DNA of 64,000 nt. It comes from Chara braunii. Taxonomy: Eukaryota > Plantae > Charophyceae. Positions 27,060 through 37,902 of the stretch are shown one piece after another. The notes under the pieces are model-generated. The model made no database searches. It was not told the DNA's origin and was given only the letters and a program-made list of their open reading frames with translations. Within the stretch, counting starts at the first letter, position 1. The number at the start of each line of letters is the position of its first letter. The translations under genes were made by a program, and so were the position numbers. The stretch is taken from assembly GCA_003427395.1 (NCBI GenBank), contig BFEA01000017.1, positions 3,906,391-3,970,390 of the forward strand, read 5' to 3'.

Positions 27060-29410
27060 AATGGGCGTGGGCTGTGGGCTGGGTGTGGTGGGCTGTAGGC
27101 TGCGGGCTGTGGGTTGTGGGCTGGGTTCAGAGAGATGTGGGGTGGGGTGCAGTACTATGTGGACTGGGTACGACACTGTGCGGACTGTATAGCACTATGT
27201 GGGCTGCTGCATGGGCTGGGTGCAGTATGCACCGGCTAGGTGGCAATGTGTGGAGAGGGTGTTGTATTGTGTGGGCTGTGTGTGTAGTATATGAGCTGGG
27301 CGTGATTCTGTGTGGGTTGAATATGGTACTAAGTGGGTTGGATATGGTACTGTGTTATGATCCTGGCCAATTTCGAAGTACAAAATTCATGAGAAAGCAC
27401 ACTGCCGTCCAATTGCAAAAGAAATGAGTGAGCTTCGGAGGAGAGCGAGGCAAAGAGGAAGAAGAAGAAAGAAAGATGGAAGAAAGAAGAAGAAGAAGGT
27501 GTACACCAGCAAAGACCAATGATAATTTCCTTTTTCTCGCCAACCACTCTCCTCCTCCTCATATCACCCTCTTATTTCACAATAAATAATAATAATAATG
27601 TTGAATGGCTGAACCAGAATCAATGTCCGGGTCCCTCTTCTACTGCTTGGCATAACATGAGGTCCTTCATAGCCATGGCCGCCTCCTTTCTCTTCGTGAA
27701 GGCCTTGCCCGCTGTGCAAAAGACAACTCAAAGCAGCTATGGCTGCTCCTGCTCGGGCGGCCATGCCTGACTCTGCCTCGAAGCTTCTTGATGTAGCTCT
27801 ACCCCAATGGGGCCTGCCAGATGCAGCGCCCACCAGGGTGATGAAGATGGCATCCACCATAGCCAGGCAAGTACCTCTGGTGCTCCCCATTCCTAGTCCT
27901 CGTCTTCGTCCTCCTCCAGCCCGGGCTCCTCCACCATAGCCAAGGTGGGGAACTGGGCGCTCCTGCTTCCCCAGCAGCGCTGCTTCACCCAGCGCTGCTC
28001 AAGCCAGCGCTCCAGCAGTGTGTTGCCAAACTTGCACCCGCAGAATGAGGAGGAGCACTTTGCTCCTTCTGGAGATATAGCGGCCCGCGTGCCTCTTGGG
28101 CGGTGACTTCCAGGCTGGGTGGCCTCCAAGCAACCGGTACCGCCTCCCTTTCGGAGGGAAACGTCGTTGTAGACTCTGATGTTGCCCGTACAGGCCTTAG
28201 ACTCAGACTACTAGGACTGGTACCTGCCTAGACCTAGCGTACAACTACTGGGCCTCTAAAAATGCCAACTTTTGTTTTCTTCTGCTCGGCCACGAGTACC
28301 CGACACACCTACTTGGTGTGGTAGTGGCCTACCTGCTACTTGAGTGTTTTTCCACTGCTCTGAGTGTCGTGGGCGTCTTTTCCTGCCACTTGAGTGTTTC
28401 CTCTGCTGCAACCCTCAATGTCACGGCCACAGGCAAGTACCGGCCGGCCCTCCGGGCGGCCCGAACGAACGAGTACCCTTGCAGAGTCGCACGTACTCAA
28501 ACCGTCAAGCACTCAGACAGGCACGCAGAACAGCAAGCACGCACATACACAGACTTAGAAAACTCAGCAACAAGCGGGAAACTGAGCAAGGCATACATTC
28601 TTCCATTGGCAAAACTCAGAAATCAGCTGTGTGTCTCAGTCTGTGTTTGGCAGGTCCTTACAACTGTGTCGGCTGAGTGTGGTATTATGTGGGCTGGGTG
28701 TGATACTAGGTGAGTTGGGTGCAGTTGTCTGTGGGCTTGGTGCAGTAGTACTATGGCGCCTGTGAGTGGGAATTTGTGATGTGGGTGTGTTATTGTGTTG
28801 GCTGGGTGTGGGGAAATTTTGAATTTGGTGTACTCTAATGTTTGCTGGGTGTGGAAATCTGTGATGTGGGTGTGGGTTGGTTGTGTTACTCTGTGATGTG
28901 GATGCGAGTTCGTTGTGGCACTATGTGAGGTGGGTGCAGTGGCCTGTTGGCTCGGTGCAGCACTATGTGGCTTGGTGTGGTACCATGCGGGGTTGGTGCA
29001 GTACTATGTGGGTTTTCTGCAGTAGTTCGTGGGCTGGGTGTGGGCTGGGTGTGGTATTATCTGTGCTAGGTGTGGGCTGGGTGTAGGCTTGACGTGGTAT
29101 GGGGTGGGTGTGGTAGTATGTAGGGTGGGTGCAGATCTTCGTGGTTTGGTGGAACCCTATGTGGGCCAGGTGTGGTACCTTCTTGGCTGGGTGGTAGAGT
29201 GTTAGCTGTTTCTAATACTATGTTGGCTGGGTGTGGTACTGTGTGTGTTAGGTGCGGCAATATGGAGGCTGGGTGCAGTACTAGGTAGTCCGGATGTCGT
29301 GCTGGGCGTGACAGATGTGGCAGTATGTGGGCTAGGTGTGGTAGTATGTGGATTGGGTGTGTTACTATGTGTGGTGGGCATGGTACTTTGTGTGTTGGGT
29401 GTTGTACTAA
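27060..29410. repeat. Degenerate ~21-bp GT-rich minisatellite (gtactatgtgggctgggtg..) split by a ~1.3-kb unrelated block (27355-28670)
   Basis: Units at 27060-27355 and 28670-29410. The same repeat occurs in reverse orientation at ~45560-46320. Confidence 0.7.
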
Positions 29411-30029
29411 GTGTAAATAAAGGCAAATATCGAGAGAATGAGGGGCAGGCAGGTCTAGAAGTTGAAAACGAACGAGTGGAGCTTTGTCTGTGCAGTGGCA
29501 GTATGGGTCCATGGAATGACCAGACACTTTTCTCCTCTCAAATGTAGAAAGGAAAAAGTTGATCTCAGAAGTGACCTTGTTTATGGCGGTCAAACGAGCA
29601 TAGTTTAGTGGTTCCACAAAAGTGAAACCATGAGCCTGGCGGGACCGTGAGGGCCTCTACTCTCCCCCTTGTTCTTTTTTTTTCAAGCAAGAAGTATCCT
29701 TCTCAACTCCTTGGGTTATGCCTTAATCCCGTGATCTCTTCCTTGGCTGCTCTGCTCTGCTAGGTGTGTGGGAACCGTTTTGTGATGTCATGCTTCCACA
29801 ATCTCTTTCTTTTTTGAAATGTGGTTCTGTTGTTGTCATATGACCATCTTCTATTGCTGGGCCGCTCTGCTCTGCCCTGCCAGATGTGCAGAAAACCTTC
29901 CTGTGTTGGCACTACTTTCTTTGGGATCATAATTCTGCACGGTTTGCTCCTGGTTTTGCAGATTCGTGACATCAGCTTCTTAAAAAAAAATAATAATAAT
30001 AAAAAATACTGCCCTATATTCTTCTCTCA

Positions 30030-30346
30030 ATATATCTCCCACTACCTAGCTATGTATACCGGGCATGAAGTTAAGTCAGAAGTCTTTGATGTCCCACGTT
30101 TAGGGCTAAAGCTACGTGCTGGTTATGGGTTGCTCCTATCCCCTCAGGGTTGAACCTAACCCCTGGCAACAAAGGGATAGGACCAGATCCCCGAACAATG
30201 AACCCGTGGGGAGAGGGGGCAAGCTGACTATTTCAGCTGGTGACCCTGCAGCTTGCCGCAGGAGGCCATGGGGATTCAACTGGATGATGTGGGGATTCAA
30301 ACCCATGACCTCCTGAATGCAGCTTTCATGCTCTACCAACTGAGCT
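30030..30346 (-). mobile_element. tRNA-derived SINE, family 1
   Basis: Reverse complement of 30281-30346 is agctcagttggtagagc...gggtttgaatccccacatcatcca (A box, B box, ends in CCA). Body shared with the copies at 40871 and 42891. Confidence 0.8.
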
Positions 30347-30677
30347 GGGCTGATGGGCCCGTGACATCAGGTTCTTACTTGCAACATAATGACGCAAACT
30401 ACTTACTTCAGAGATCAAACATGTTATTTCAGAGATCAAACATGTTATTGGTTTTCAAAAGCCTCCAACATGCCCCCAGCCGCTTCTCAGACATGGGCGA
30501 TATGTCTTTGTAAACTGGAGCCCCGATGTGTGGCAAAAAAAAGCCTCCAACATTCAACCTGCCACTTTTCAGACAATCATCCATTCTCTAATTGTAACAT
30601 TGCTGTTCTGCGTCCCTTACAATCATTCGTGCCGACTGGCTGAATGTTGTACGGTTATCTCCTCATAGTATACTCTC

Positions 30678-30713
<36 letters not shown>

Positions 30714-30938
30714 CACACAAACACACACGGTCATGCTTTTTTTGTGGAGCTGTGATTAGTGAACATGACAACACAGACACACAAGTTTCAGACTTACTGC
30801 AATTTTTGTCAGGGGTTTGGACCAGCACTCTGCGAGGATTGCAGGGTTTTTGTGAGTAAAATCAACCGCTTTTCTCAGGCGTAATGCTAACTCCAGGTGA
30901 CAAGGTGAGTCCTTATCCACCAGTCAAATGCATCTTGG

Positions 30939-30991
30939 GACTGTCGGGGTTCAACCTCCTGATGAGTCGGTGAAAGTCCGACGAAACAGTC
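30939..30991 (+). ncRNA. Type III hammerhead ribozyme, intact catalytic core
   Basis: Stem III gactgt/acagtc; GUC cleavage triplet 30943-30945; stem I ggggt-tca-acctc; CTGATGA 30959-30965; stem II gtcgg-tgaaagt-ccgac; GAAA 30983-30986. Confidence 0.88.
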
Positions 30992-31050
30992 TGGTGCAGT
31001 GATGATTTGTTGTGGTGTTGTCTTTAGTCAACATGACAGCACATCTTGGG

Positions 31051-31109
31051 CAGACTGTCGGGGTTCAACCTCCTGACGAGAGTCGGTGAAAGTTCAATGG
31101 AATAGTCTG
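31051..31109 (+). ncRNA. Hammerhead ribozyme copy 2, degenerate
   Basis: cagactGTC ggggttcaacctc CTGACGA (ga insertion) gtcggtgaaagttcaat GGAA tagtctg; stem II and GAAA damaged. Confidence 0.7.
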
Positions 31110-31172
31110 GCACAGTCATGCTTCCTCTTGTGGAGTTGTGTATAGCGAGGTGGGGAGGGAGAGATACTTGGG

Positions 31173-31229
31173 CATACTGTCGGGGTTCAACCTTTTGATG
31201 AGTCGGTAAAAGTCCGATGAAACAGGCTG
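31173..31229 (+). ncRNA. Hammerhead ribozyme copy 3 (C3->U variant)
   Basis: actGTC ggggttcaacctt TTGATGA gtcgg-taaaagt-ccgat GAAA cag. Confidence 0.72.
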
Positions 31230-31256
31230 TCACAGTTATGCTTCCTCTTGTGGAGT

Positions 31257-31296
<40 letters not shown>

Positions 31297-31319
31297 TCCT
31301 GCTTTTATCAACACATACT

Positions 31320-34030
31320 ACTAAAGGTTAGTCGCCCTCGCCGTGACACTTAGTGTTTCGATGCGGGGCTCGGGTTCGTTGTTTGTTTAGAGTTCGGAAT
31401 GGCGAGTTCGGCGTCCTCTGAGGTTCGCTTAGTGTTTGATGCGGGCCTATTGGTGTGGGGGTGTTCTTTGTCTAGATTCAGCCGCCCCTGTGGGTCCTTC
31501 CGTTGGCCTGCATTTGGTCTCGTTTTGGGCCTGGTGCATCCGATGTGTTTTCTGGTGAGCCGCTTTTGTTTGTCATGGCGCGGTGTCTGCCCTTGCTCGA
31601 GCTTGGAGATCTGGAAAACAAAAAGTTGCAAAAGTTGACGGCTGGTCCGGCGGTTTTAACTGGTCGTCTTCCCGGTGAAGGTGCGTCTTCTTTGCGGTGC
31701 TCGCCATCCGCCAAAATCGTGAATGAATCTGGATATACAAACTGCCACGATGCATGCTCGCTGTTGGCGGATGGCGAGTACAGCTAGGCTCTTGCTTGCT
31801 TTGTTTGCTTGGTGGTGAACTGTCAGGGCGTTAGCATTTGTGTTGTCCGGTGTTTTCCTGACGGCGGGATTGTGATGATGACTTCCGGAAGGGCTTGCAT
31901 CGGGCCCTCTTGACCTGCCCGCCGTGGGTTGGGGTGATTGTGGGCCTTGCTTCCCTGCATAACATTGTGCACGCATTTGGACTCTTTGTGGGGCTGTTGC
32001 GTCGGACCTGTCACGCGATGTATCTGGCTCATCTTCTGTGCCGGTGGCCGGTTACTGTCCTCTTCGTTGCTTGGGTTGGAATCAAATTCCCGATGACCGA
32101 AGTTTTGCGGTGACTACGGTAACTGTCAGCCCTACACAACCAACTCCACAGATGACAGCGCTTAGGGCTGCGCTGACCCGTCGTTATGCAGGGAGTATAC
32201 TGCTGCCTTGGCTAAGAATTCAGATGCTCAACTGACAGTTGCGATACCTCTGCTTCGAACAAGTGTATCAATAGCCTGCTAGGCAGCTCCAGTGGATTCA
32301 CCGGAATCCTTGCTCGCACAAACGTTGCCTCTGGTAACTGGGTCAGACAACAATCCAACGGTTCAACTCGTTACCGGCATCTGTTCGGCTCGCGATTCGG
32401 TGGATCATTGTCGCCGTGAGTCTCTGGTCAGGATCTCCTTCCATATCGCCCCAGTGTCGAATGCTTTGTGATCATTACATCGTTCTACGCGGTGCTTTTT
32501 GTTGGGACTGGTCGACCAAAAATCTATTGTGGTTCTTCGACTGAGGTTGGCTTCTGTGTCAGTCGTCTTTTCGAAACTTTTATGGTTCCTCGTGCTCTCA
32601 TTGGACTTTTGTAAGGAGGCATCCTGTGTACGTATTTTGGGATCACATTGCTGCGTTGCAACAGTTGGTCGCCTTTCCTAATTTCTCGCATTCGGCATGT
32701 ATCGTTTTTTCAGTGTGTAACTCACGCGTGTCATTTGCCATGCCTGTCCATCTATGTCAGCAAGTTCTTCCCACGTCACGGTGACCTGAATAACCATTGC
32801 TCTTGCCTCACTTCGTACATATAAACGACTTGTACAAGCTTCTCCAAATTACACCGTTTACAAATGGGTGTGGAACTTCCCGATCTATACACACGGGTGT
32901 CACATCAGATCACCATGCCATGTCGAATGCCTCTCTTGTGTGTTTTCGCCTCATCGTCACTGCTTTTCCTTTGTTATGAGGTATTTTTGACAGCTCTCCG
33001 TGGGATGTCCATCTCATGTGTTTCCTTTGTTATGAGCTGTGTTTGACATCTCGCTTTGCATCATGTGTTTTCGCCTCATTTGCCACTTGGACACACTAAA
33101 ATGCTCTGGATATCCATCTGCATTTTCGTGAAACTGGCAATGCAACTTCTGTCTCCTCAACTTGCCCTCGCACCCTTTCTTCAACTCTCCCAATATTCCC
33201 ACTTCCAAAACCAGTGTGTCTACCCTCGACAACCAAGCCATCATTTCTACCTTGCCTTACTTTTGCCGTATTCCTCAGTGTCTGCCCTCCGCCATAGAAC
33301 CAATGACTTCTATATATATGTAAATGATTTATGTATACATAAACAAACATACGTACAGAGAGTCAGAGAGAGGGAGAGAGGGAGACAACAGACTGTTAAT
33401 ACCTCCCTTCTCAGATCCAATTCGATGCAAACACTTTTCTGAGTACTGCTTTCCTGCTATGCGTTTTTCAACTTCATTTTTTGATTAAATTCACAGCTCG
33501 CACTTTAATCGATTGACAATTGACAGGCTGCCACTATTTAAACCTCCTTCTCACCCTCCAATTGTTACAAACCATCATGTCCTCCATGTACGCCTCAAGA
33601 CACGTCCATACAACTTCCTCTCCTGCTGGGAAGGTTTTCACCTTCCGCAAATTCGCATGTTACTTCCACCCTTGAAAAACAAATGCTTCCGTATGTTTGA
33701 CAAAGGTCCCCTGTGTTCCTGGACTGCCTTACTCTTACGCATCTTTCTATTTCCAGCTGTTTTCCCTGTACACTGCACTCCATGCACCTGTTCCTCGCGA
33801 CTCTTTTCTGGTACTCGAAACATATTCCTGTCGCCAAAGATACTGATGTTTCTCTTCCCCAACCCTTTGAGCCGCTGGCAGGCCAATCACTCTTAACAGT
33901 ACAAGATAGAAAATAGGGTTGGTGGTGTAACAACTCGTCGACCGATGGTCTAACAGAACAAAATCATACTGCATTTTCTGGCACGGTCAATTCGATGATG
34001 ATACCCCACCGCTGCTTCCCTTGATAATAT
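31320..34030 (-). mobile_element. Possible heavily decayed LINE (L1-like) 3' remnant
   Basis: Only a weak motif: KMQYDFV...YLVLLRVIGLPAAQ(xG) resembles the post-RT LVxWxxIxLPxxxGGLG segment. No RT core recognised; boundaries approximate. Confidence 0.25.
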
Positions 34031-34559
34031 TGGGGGGAGAAAAAAAAAACGCCCGTGCACTGGGGCCTGAGCGGTGGAGTCAGGGCATACTCAGCTGAGC
34101 AATTTGCTGGGCCCTTCTCCCCTCTATTACAGACCAGCCTGGATCGAGGTGACTTCGATTGCGTCCGCAGCTAACTTGAAAAGTCCCATGACGACTCCGC
34201 AGCTAACTTATCAAGTCCCATGACGTTTGCCTTTTTCTTTAAGGCCCGAGCTGGATGCGCCTGTCCGGATTTACGACCGTAAGTGTGGCCCTTTCTGCAT
34301 GACTCACCAAAAATGTGAAATCGAAATGAATCTTCCACTACAAGGTCCGAAGATGCACTGCCGTATCTTTCTTCTTCTGTGAATTTGGTGAGTGGTGTGT
34401 TGAGGCTTGTGCCCGGCAGAAACAAATGGGAAAATTCAGCCCCTGGATCGCCAGTGGCCCTGTTTCTCTTGGTGAGTCATGATCAATGTTGTTTTTCTCA
34501 CTGTGGACATGTCTGACCTTATGCTACTGTCTATTCCACCCTCAGCTTCTCACGACCCT

Positions 34560-34920
34560 CTTCTCTACGGGATGCTACTCTTGTCGAGTTCCAACTCAAC
34601 GCTACACTATTCTGTACTCTATAACCTGCAGTACTCTCTACTCTACACCAAACTGTACTCTACTCTGCTCTCTACCCTCTACTACTGTCAACTCTTTTCT
34701 TTGCTGTCTGCTCTCTACTGCTATGTACACTGTGTCTACACTTAACGCTGTCTACTCCGATCTACCCTACTCTCTACTCTCTACTCTCTATGTCACTCTA
34801 TTGTACTCTACTCTATATTCCACTCTACTCTCTGCTGAGTCTACTCTTCTCTCGATGCACTGTAATCTCTACTCTAAGCTACTCTCTATTGTCAGCTACT
34901 CGCAGCTCTCATACCTACTG
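34560..34920. repeat. Degenerate (CTCTA)n repeat
   Basis: ctctactctctactctctac-like units. Confidence 0.85.
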
Positions 34921-35059
34921 AATGGAACCCTTTCTGTGGCGGGCGGAGCTGCGCTGGCTAATCTTGTAGTTGCTGTTTCTATAATGACTCTCTCTTCCTG
35001 TGACCGAAGAGGCATATAATAGCTTCCTCTTCCTGTGTCCGAAGAGGCACACACCGACT

Positions 35060-35123
<64 letters not shown>

Positions 35124-35211
35124 ATAGCATGTACATGAGATAACAAGGAAAGTCCTAGTGTGAGAATGACGTTAGCACATACAAGGCGTATTAAGATTTT
35201 GACAGCTATGA

Positions 35212-35388
<177 letters not shown>

Positions 35389-36786
35389 TGATTTTTGTGG
35401 TCTTGTCAATGGGAGTGTTATGGGACAGCCCGGAAACGTGCAGCTTTTGTGCGAGGCCTTGTTTCTTCCCTGAGTTGCTCGAGGTAGTGGGCGTAGGTTG
35501 CTGTAGTACATGAAAGGTGGAAAATGACAGAAAACTGGTTGGTGATATCTTCGTGCACTTATAAGAAGCTGCTCCAATGGTCATCCATTATTGATGGAGA
35601 CCCCCCTGTTTATTCTTGTTCTTAAAGCACGTGAGGGTCCCTCATTTCTGGGCGAGGCGAACTGTGAGGATGAAGTCTGTTCTGCCACCATCTCCGCTCA
35701 CCTGTCATTCTGTGCATATTTGGTTGGATCTGCTATGAAACAAGTAGTAACCCAGATCTGGTGCATCAGCTTACACCAAAAGCATCACATTCCTACTTTC
35801 TTGCAAAATGATGGGTGAAATGCACACTAGCAATAGTTTGGCACCTGATCGTGTTTCCATGGTGATGACATCTCAGCATGTTATCGGATTAATGCATGTG
35901 GGGAGAGGGACTGAGGTGGGAGGTGGAGGTTTCTTTTCACATATTTGAAGGACTCACTGCCTTTTACTTGTACGGGTGAAGTAACTTGACAGCCCGTGGC
36001 ATTTGCAATGTGAAAGGGTTTCTGGTTGTCGTCATGGTGCTCATGGAAAAGATACATATGAATGTAAGGGCTGTGGAGGTTTTCACGGCGTGCCAACTTG
36101 ATTGATGGTGCGAGCAAGGGTCGGCAAGAGTGGAGAAGTGTGAGCATGTAGAATCACACTTGGGAGGGTAGGCAGAGCGGGTTATGACGCCGAACCTCTG
36201 GTGAGAGGTCAGATTCAACTCTTAGCGCTTATTTGCTCTATTGCTGAACTAGTTGCCATTCTAGAAGAGTCGTGGTTGCTCTCAAAAGATGTAGTCTCCA
36301 GGGCCGTACTCAGATAAGGACTTGAGCTCTTCTTGGACTGAGCTCGGTGTGATCCATTTCAGAAAGTCCTGTAGTACGAGAATGGGCTGTGTGTAAGCGA
36401 CTGCGACAGCATCGTAGTATGTGTGGTTGGCACCTCTAGAGAAAGAGTTTATGTCATGCTGAAGGTGGCCAATGGGAACAGCACCCCTATTAGGATAAGC
36501 CTGCTAAAGATGTAGATCAAGTCGCAAGCTTTGCATGTGAGGTGGTTGTGGTTTCAAGTGATGTTGTGACGAGGACTTCGAATATGTCAACCTCTTCGCA
36601 ACCGCATCCGTTGCCTCCCTAAGCTGGTTGAGAGAAGAGATGCTCTGCCAAATAAAAACAGGTTCCTCTGGTGGTCATGGAAAAGTTGGTTCATGCTGCA
36701 CTGTTTTGGAAAAGCGTATTCTTATGCATGCTATCTGCACCTCCAAGAGAGTCTTGGAGAGAGAGAGAAAGATGTGTGTGTGTGTG

Positions 36787-36876
<90 letters not shown>

Positions 36877-37902
36877 NNNNNNNNNNNNNNNNNNNNNNNN
36901 NNNNNNNNNNNNNNNNNNNNNNNNNNNNNNNNNNNNNNNNNGTCGGAGAGGTCTGTGCTTTTCATGTTGAAACTGACTGTACATATATGGAGCGGGTCGG
37001 AGAGGTCTGTGCTTTTCATGTTGAAACTGACTGTACGTATATCAGATTAACTTGCAGATTATAGTGCGGAGCAGTGGAACCCATGTATTGGTTTTCCTGT
37101 GTCATTTGATTGTGTTGGATGTTGCAGACAGGCGTTGTGTCTACGCTGTTTTTCTTGAGGGAATATTTGACAGTTGGTATGAGCTTCGTTACGCAAAATG
37201 AGATCACAAACTATTACTCCCGTCTTTTCTATGTAGTCGATGTCTCTCTTCTGGTCTAATATGCATCCGAACGGTGGAGGAGTGACAACTGTTTCTACCG
37301 TTGTTTTGTGAAAATGGGATGTAAAGAAATTAAACTGTATCGCATCTCTCAAGATATGGCTATCATGCTGGGAGGCTTTCAGAAAATAGCGTAGACAGTG
37401 GTTCCTTCAAAGGTTCTCGCTTTGGCGGCCCTGCTTCGTGAGCCCATTTCTGATTCTTCTGAACCCTTTTCTTCTGGTTATGCTTCCCCTTTTTGTTCCT
37501 TTTCTGTATGTTTCCTGGTCTTCTTTGCTCTGTTTTTTCTCCTGCGGATACCGTCACACTCTCTCCTTGCGAAATCCCTTTTCAATCCTTGCGTGCTCTC
37601 TTTTGATGTGGCACTGTTGCTTTCGTAATGTAGTACACTGCCTGGATTGTGGTGGACCTGGCCGACCTATCATCATGGTTAACATGACATGGGCGGAAAG
37701 AACAGAATCAAGCTGATTTGATCCTGGTGGTGGAAGTTGCGGGGCTTGATAAGGGATGGTGGTGGTACTTTCAGCGAGGTATATAGGAGCGGATTGCTGT
37801 ATCAGTGCTGTAAGCTGTGATTTGAGGTTTCAATTCATGTTGCAGTGGTGAAACACAGGTGGATTTACAATCCCTTTGCGATCCCGGCTTATTATGTCAC
37901 AG

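Follow-up and report, generated by a model that had tools for sequence, protein, structure and literature searches.

A stretch of 64,000 nucleotides of the Chara braunii genome (assembly GCA_003427395.1, contig BFEA01000017.1, positions 3,906,391 to 3,970,390 of the forward strand), referred to here as the window and used for all numbering, was analysed with respect to a tandem array of hammerhead ribozymes that lies in an intron of a protein kinase gene. The host gene encodes a kinase domain of the SNF1/AMPK/SnRK1 type, with sequences typical of plants, and the translations of its exons matched the Snf1/AMPK-alpha chains of solved relatives (E=1e-30 and 1e-12). The intron (24935-35232, forward strand, 10,298 nt, GTGAGT...CAG) is the third among the coding exons seen in the window; its ends were set by translation, and the exon before it ends in ...NYAAPE. 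The ribozymes and the kinase gene are on the same (+) strand, so that the array is in sense orientation, as stated in the first-pass annotation of this DNA, which had placed it in the sense strand of a 10.3-kb intron 3 of SnRK1. The ten largest open reading frames (ORFs) of the interval from 26.4 to 35.0 kb matched no Pfam family, no long ORFs were present near the array, and a tRNA search found no tRNA gene around it. The array is probably an old, decaying insertion of a short, non-coding, tandem hammerhead-bearing mobile element, a member of a non-LTR (long terminal repeat), retrozyme-like family with type III ribozymes.

The tandem structure was called with Tandem Repeats Finder, which reported a repeat at 30939-31261 with a period of 120 nt, a copy number of 2.8 and 78% matches. 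Read from the sequence, the GUC triplets of the three monomers end at 30945, 31059 and 31181, giving spacings of 114 and 122 nt, in exact agreement with the first-pass annotation. Within each unit, the first 55-57 nt have the shape of a hammerhead and the next 59-65 nt form a spacer. This was the sole hammerhead array within the window.

To the left of the array, a compound microsatellite with no assigned strand (30673-30728), consisting of (CT)19 and then a CA-rich run (Tandem Repeats Finder row 30673-30711, and sequence), grades into a partial unit on the forward strand (30729-30785). This unit is 5'-truncated and consists of spacer only (GTCATGCTT...GTGGAG.TGTG...AACATGACA.CAC). The presence of such a ribozyme-less unit near 30726-30778 had been noted earlier, and was upheld by blastn and alignment, with 82% identity to the spacer of copy 1 over 38 nt at 30738-30775 (E=0.001). 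Between the partial unit and the array lies an unrelated stretch of about 135 nt (30786-30919, no strand), with an alignment score at shuffle level and no second copy elsewhere in the window. A fourth, degraded unit in 30779-30930 was ruled out, as the local alignment score was 15 compared with a shuffle mean of 14.8 (sd 2.2).

The array proper is entered through a spacer-tail remnant (30920-30937, +; …GTCAA.ATG.CATCTTGGG), identified by alignment with the spacer ends ahead of copies 2 and 3, which leads into helix III of hammerhead copy 1 (30938-30992). This is followed on the same strand by spacer 1 (30993-31051), hammerhead copy 2 (31052-31108), spacer 2 (31109-31173), hammerhead copy 3 (31174-31228) and a truncated spacer 3 (31229-31256). 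Spacer 2 resembles spacer 3 in its first half and is rich in purines, and unlike spacer 1, in its second. As judged from the sequence and the alignments, spacer 3 ends in ...GGAGTTGTG and runs directly into the (TG)n of the right flank, a compound (TG)10(GA)10 microsatellite (31257-31296, no strand; Tandem Repeats Finder rows 31257-31276 and 31276-31296) that is the reverse complement of the motif types of the left flank. Both outer junctions lie in CA/TG microsatellites and show microhomology, CACAC with CACAG of the unit on the left, and GTTGTG with (TG)n on the right. The array both begins and ends within spacer sequence, which, together with the copy number of 2.8, is expected of a copy from a multimeric or circular template. 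Compound TG/GA (or CA/CT) microsatellites were also present at 15684-15754, 35050-35130, 36760-36876 and 45473-45540, often beside assembly gaps (runs of N at 15755-16448, 18386-19150 and 36877-36941); such repeats may serve retroelements of the Chara braunii genome as preferred landing sites, or may be their tails.

The whole window was searched on both strands with the Rfam covariance model RF00008 (Hammerhead_3; gathering score 48.5 bits). Copy 1 was the only hammerhead above this curated threshold, with 52.3 bits (E=1.2e-8), a full-length match to the model and zero non-canonical pairs flagged, which bears out the earlier claim that it retains every core nucleotide and all three helices. 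Helix III is open and comprises 7 bp (30938-30944 with 30986-30992), including the A15.1-U16.1 pair (A30986-U30944). The cleavage triplet GUC occupies 30943-30945, with C17 at 30945, and the cut is predicted after C30945. Helix I and its loop (30946-30958) comprise 4 bp and the 5-nt loop UUCAA, and helix II and its loop (30966-30982) comprise 5 bp, with G10.1-C11.1, and the 7-nt loop UGAAAGU. The core strands are CUGAUGA (30959-30965) and GAA (30983-30985). The conserved core (C3-U4-G5-A6-N7-G8-A9, G12-A13-A14, A15.1-U16.1 and an NUH triplet) is therefore complete, helices I and II are capped by loops, and, because helix III is open, the ribozyme is of type III. A type I assignment is not appropriate, as Hammerhead_3 was the best Rfam family.

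The other two copies are damaged in the core or the stems, as had been proposed, and the lesions could be located. Copy 2, with 84% identity to copy 1 in pairwise alignment, was not detected by RF00008 even at E<=10; two extra nucleotides follow CUGACGA, helix II is broken in its 3' strand (TCCGAC to TTCAAT), and GGAAU stands in place of GAAAC. Copy 3 scored 26.1 bits, far under the gathering score, with 4 non-canonical positions flagged; C3 is changed to U, helix I is closed by a G-U pair, positions 10.1-11.1 of helix II also form G-U, and helix III contains two mismatches. As they stand, neither copy is a member of RF00008. C>T and G>A changes accounted for the majority of the lesions in the pairwise alignments, and several fell at CpG, a spectrum that suggests the usual decay of a silenced repeat.

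Folding predictions for copy 1 were less clear-cut. The ribozyme fold, built by hand and evaluated with nearest-neighbour parameters, has an energy of -17.7 kcal/mol, but the minimum-energy fold (-19.0 kcal/mol) is a different one, 1.3 kcal/mol more stable, in which 30943-30948 pairs with 30977-30982 and hides the cleavage site. Isolated copy 1 did not give the hammerhead fold by minimum-energy folding (z-score -0.95), and in contexts of 180-320 nt the predicted probability of its ribozyme helices was low, the competing helix being favoured more strongly as the context was lengthened. Competing folds are common in natural hammerheads, in which cleavage occurs during transcription, and for this reason folding neither proves nor excludes the activity of copy 1. 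The use of minimum-energy folding as evidence against a ribozyme was set aside, as the covariance model and the hand-built fold agree.

For the 114-nt monomer 30946-31059 that would be excised by cuts at the first two sites, the predicted minimum free energy (MFE) was -44.7 kcal/mol. Helices I and II form in this fold, and a hairpin of spacer 1 extends and closes helix III, so that the monomer is predicted to be a compact three-way junction with adjacent ends, as expected of an RNA that is to be ligated into a circle. UUCA of loop 1 and UGAA of loop 2 are complementary, and in nearest-neighbour folding this complementarity feeds the competing helix 30943-30948/30977-30982. The change G30976C, the variant that prevails among the expressed relatives described below, strengthens the competing fold (MFE -23.2 vs -19.0 kcal/mol), with the ribozyme fold staying at -17.7 kcal/mol; it adds a pair to a 9-bp alternative helix in which the cleavage site and the helix I strand pair with loop 2 and the helix II strand. 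These folding results may reflect a built-in off-switch or a loop-loop tertiary contact.

Three stranded oligo-dT libraries and one contig set carrying the same species label were aligned to 30000-35600. Exon 4 (35233-35364) was covered on the gene's strand only, at a bin depth of 27-43, and this fixed the strand convention. Within the intron, where the depth was about 0-3, reads piled up only on approximately 30947-30993, the 45-nt ribozyme core. The per-base depth at 30976 was 652-1378 in sense and 134-407 in antisense orientation, with sense exceeding antisense about 3-5-fold in the three libraries, and the sense depth of the bins beside the array was 0.4-3.4. RNA of ribozyme polarity is thus abundant for the family, in comparison with the depth of the host exon.

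Between 94 and 96% of the aligned reads ran on for at least 20 letters into sequence unlike this locus, and their origin is therefore in paralogues elsewhere in the genome. Most reads carried A30954G and G30976C, both of which fall in loops and leave the helices and core untouched. Several read joints connected a ribozyme end, a different variant of the spacer, and a spacer tail, which corresponds to the same ribozyme-spacer-ribozyme order as in the array. A single 3' continuation (TTGTCACAGCCCC...) from about 30990 dominated, with 550-1217 reads per library and 95% agreement, indicating that at least one paralogue is part of a very highly expressed polyadenylated transcript elsewhere in the genome. 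The array belongs to a dispersed family that is transcribed from other loci.

A further relative was sought in other contigs. The strict pattern of the ribozyme family gave no match in metagenome or viral contigs. A looser 20-mer, covering helix I and the core, matched 10 contigs, one of which contained a ribozyme; the other nine were chance matches with no ribozyme in any of them. In the positive contig (BFBZ01011546.1, here L006), the type III hammerhead spans 559-614 (37 bits, E=2e-4) and shares 87% identity with copy 1 over 46 nt. It keeps both core strands and has the triplet GUA in place of GUC; position 17 of a hammerhead can be any base except G. In helix I, a G-U pair becomes A-U through an extra base, and in helix III a C-G pair is replaced by U-A in a double change. 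The unit is solo, within longer non-repetitive sequence, and its flanks are unrelated to the window, with the 5' flank resembling the commonest 5' continuation of the expressed paralogues (a comparison made by eye). When the three copies of the array and L006 were considered together, 95% of cells paired in register, vs 37-53% when the partner strand was slid.

Two groups of retrozymes were available for comparison. In the LTR retrozymes of plants, the ribozyme is held in LTRs of 300-400 bp, and the elements have a primer-binding site (PBS) for tRNA-Met, a polypurine tract (PPT) and a target-site duplication of 4 bp; their circles measure 600-1000 nt, and Gypsy-type LTR elements mobilise them (PMC4918200). 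The non-coding core between the LTRs is 300-600 bp. Like them, the array has a type III hammerhead and a host of the green lineage, and is non-coding and non-autonomous. Copy 1 is also near the Rfam consensus, as are their ribozymes, this consensus itself being built largely from plant and viroid-like examples. Unlike them, the array lacks LTRs, PBS, PPT, 4-bp duplications and units of 600-1000 nt. No direct repeats longer than the units of 114 and 122 nt were found around the array, no tRNA-Met PBS was found within 2 mismatches in 30500-31500, and purine runs were confined to 13 nt of spacer 2 and the (GA)n at the flank. The earlier statement that the array is far smaller than the plant LTR retrozymes was thus correct.

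The non-LTR retrozymes of metazoans are closer in organisation. They consist of short, head-to-tail, non-coding monomers with one hammerhead each in a single polarity, have no LTR, PBS or PPT, and are abundantly transcribed, with highly self-paired monomer RNA (PMC7229834). The array shares this organisation, its family is abundantly transcribed, and its monomer RNA is predicted to be highly self-paired. Penelope-like elements occur alongside the metazoan retrozymes and presumably mobilise them (PMC7229834, PMC7761336), and the array is probably linked to such elements as well. In contrast to the array, with its type III ribozyme, units of 114-122 nt and green-lineage host, the metazoan elements carry type I hammerheads in monomers of about 150-450 bp and give rise to circles of 170-400 nt (PMC7229834). 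The structural reading of the first-pass annotation was right, and, as the family is dispersed and transcribed, the designation as a small, non-LTR, type III retrozyme-like repeat describes the family fairly. The locus itself cannot release a monomer or a circle, because copies 2 and 3, either of which would be needed for the second cut, are inactivated.

Both the likely mobiliser and the microsatellites at the ends of the array point to Penelope-like elements, which have been published for this kind of alga and were not considered in the first-pass annotation. Those of the Chlamys group are very abundant in Chara braunii and insert with a strong preference for (CA)n (Craig et al. 2021, PMC8557442). 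The same study described canonical hammerheads in two Penelope-like subclades, one of which includes C. braunii families, as well as partial tandem insertions, frequent 5' truncation and one C. braunii type with a 'canonical 3'-HHR' (PMC8557442). The microsatellite flanks, the 5'-truncated partial unit and the 2.8-unit array are insertion traits of this kind, and the partial unit, the array and the junctions with CA/TG microhomology fit Penelope-like machinery. The Chlamys/PLE-X elements of Chara braunii and Selaginella (PMC8557442) share with the array the green-lineage host, the hammerhead, the partial tandems, the 5' truncation and the (CA)n bias. They differ, in a comparison of described features only, in being 3-8-kb coding elements with a single 3' ribozyme, whereas the array has no ORF and the ribozyme unit itself is repeated.

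Isolated hammerheads in algae were mentioned in 2016, and the occurrence of hammerheads in Penelope-like elements of this algal lineage is already published. No description of type III hammerhead units of about 120 nt in tandem arrays, or of retrozymes, in streptophyte algae was found in the searchable literature.

Taken as a retrozyme-like insertion, the array would have originated as follows. Multimeric transcripts of intact master copies would cut themselves at each GUH site, and the resulting monomer of about 115-125 nt would adopt a hammerhead fold in which the spacer hairpin closes helix III. Ligation would turn this monomer into a circle, or it would serve as a linear RNA, and a reverse transcriptase acting in trans would copy it, most plausibly one from hammerhead-bearing Penelope-like (Chlamys) elements. 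These elements are probably the source of the reverse transcriptase and possibly also of the ribozyme module. Integration would be primed through microhomology at CA/TG microsatellites. The element would have landed in sense orientation in the SnRK1 intron and then have decayed, mainly by C>T and G>A changes, leaving copy 1 as a presumably neutral passenger in the kinase gene.

A number of observations weigh against this reading. The flanking microsatellites are inverted relative to each other, not direct, and compound TG/GA repeats are frequent throughout the window, so that the argument from the flanks is suggestive only; nor is a target-site duplication visible at the array, the flanks being microsatellites. 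The identity between spacers 1 and 2 is 65%, compared with 93% over 28 nt between spacers 2 and 3, which does not agree with simple rolling-circle copying from one template. This pattern would need a heterogeneous template, two events, or a later local duplication. No Penelope-like ORF is present in the window, and the identity of the reverse transcriptase was taken from the literature. The circles are ones that we infer, and oligo-dT libraries, being poor at showing circular RNA, are not well suited to reveal them. The stem covariation that had been anticipated along with the further copies amounted to a single compensatory pair in one extra sequence, which was not significant (reached in 120/500 shuffles). 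Finally, the presence of an intact copy 1 beside two dead copies could hint at constraint. By a rough Poisson estimate, the chance that a copy has no hit in its ~43 constrained positions is about 2%, and with three copies this is weak evidence either way.

A bolder version of the reading, in which the array is the fossil of undescribed 'mini-retrozymes' of streptophyte algae, is possible, but we regard it as doubtful. Type III monomers of about 115-125 nt would in that case give the smallest known ribozyme-bearing circles, be copied by Penelope-like reverse transcriptase and bridge the plant and animal retrozymes, and copy 1 would still act in cis on the SnRK1 pre-mRNA by cutting it.

The array might instead consist of stacked, heavily 5'-truncated 3' ends (pseudo-LTR, or pLTR, fragments) of an autonomous hammerhead-bearing Penelope-like element, inserted as a partial tandem. 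This origin would agree with the typical 5' truncation and partial tandem arrangement of Penelope-like elements, with the 'canonical 3'-HHR' type of C. braunii, and with the genome-wide distribution and microsatellite bias of the families (PMC8557442). A 2026 preprint, moreover, derives the non-LTR retrozymes of animals from the pLTR regions of such elements, and L006 is a solo unit within longer non-repetitive sequence. However, neither the Pfam search of the ten ORFs nor the surroundings of the array revealed a remnant of a reverse transcriptase or GIY-YIG coding sequence, and the units are complete head-to-tail monomers of 114-122 nt with an RNA predicted to fold as a closed hammerhead rod. 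We regard an origin from truncated tails as unlikely.

Another explanation is that copy 1 has been co-opted as an intronic ribozyme that cuts the nascent SnRK1 pre-mRNA and tunes the output of kinase mRNA. The cut is predicted at 6.0 kb from the start of the intron, with 4.3 kb remaining to the acceptor; copy 1 is in sense orientation, fully canonical and above the Rfam threshold, and it is intact next to two decayed copies. There are also precedents in which a ribozyme within an intron influences the amount of mRNA (PMC10919898; for intronic hammerheads, as cited in PMC7761336). The amniote intronic hammerheads and the HDV-like ribozyme of CPEB3 (PMC10919898) are, like copy 1, self-cleaving motifs in sense orientation within a long intron of a protein-coding gene; they are, however, single-copy, conserved across species and associated with measured effects on mRNA, whereas copy 1 is a member of a dispersed repeat family with dead neighbours, not a unique conserved element. 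The first-pass annotation had proposed that cleavage might be visible as a break in intronic coverage at 30945. In the three stranded libraries no position of 30000-35600 passed the test for an excess of read starts or ends, there was no pile of them at 30945/30946 and, at the very low depth of the intron, no step in the depth beside the array across the cut site; exon 4 downstream was well represented in poly(A)+ RNA. The competing helix, in addition, is predicted to hide the cleavage site. Nothing supports the cutting of SnRK1 pre-mRNA by copy 1, and we regard its co-option as very unlikely; copy 1, which still has a canonical ribozyme, may nick some nascent intron RNA.

It is extremely unlikely that this locus is an active source of a circular RNA of 114 nt (or 236 nt). 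The monomer 30946-31059 is predicted to be compact and ligation-competent, with helix III closed by the spacer, and family RNA of ribozyme polarity is abundant. The second cut, however, needs copy 2 or 3, both of which have lost core or helix elements, and reads matching the locus's own spacers and flanks were at background, with 94-96% of the ribozyme reads coming from other loci. A chance likeness to the hammerhead consensus within an ordinary minisatellite, for which the small size of the motif alone counts, was refuted for practical purposes by the covariance score (E=1.2e-8 for the window, above the curated threshold), the return of the motif in register in every unit, the transcribed paralogues, and the retention of core and helices in the outside relative L006.

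Other features were observed in the window. Three U6 snRNA copies lie within about 27 kb, inside or adjoining introns of the kinase gene, at 14097-14211 (+), 21385-21489 (-) and 41292-41402 (+); two of these were good matches (84 and 73 bits) and one was weak (29 bits), and they may be retro-copies instead of genes. A short dispersed repeat was found at 30214-30345, 41105-41179 and 43104-43207, with 78-82% identity among copies and GGTTCAAACC-like motifs of the tRNA T-arm; one of its copies precedes the U6 copy at 41292 by about 110 nt. ARAGORN detected no tRNA in this repeat, which is possibly a SINE-like (short interspersed) element. At 46529-46978 (-), in nuclear-looking sequence, there is a 450-nt match to bacterial-type small subunit (SSU) rRNA (model positions 39-536, 222 bits), which is probably an organelle-derived rDNA insert or a piece of rRNA captured by a retroelement.

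The value of the finding is in the family, the intronic copy being mostly a dated fossil. The interest specific to the locus is that an intact sense-strand hammerhead sits in a long intron of the gene for an energy-sensor kinase, which makes it useful as a natural test of whether such a ribozyme is tolerated in an intron of an essential gene. Retrozymes have been known in two forms, those of flowering plants, with LTRs, type III ribozymes and circles of 600-1000 nt, and those of animals, which are non-LTR, have type I ribozymes and circles of 170-400 nt, and are tied to Penelope-like elements. If the reading of the array as a retrozyme-like element is true, the combination of an animal-style tandem non-LTR layout with a plant-style type III ribozyme, in units of about 120 nt and in a green-lineage genome in which hammerhead-bearing Penelope-like elements also occur, would link both groups. 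The lower size limit of self-processing mobile RNAs would move down, and the finding would bear on the origin of viroid-like RNAs with type III hammerheads.

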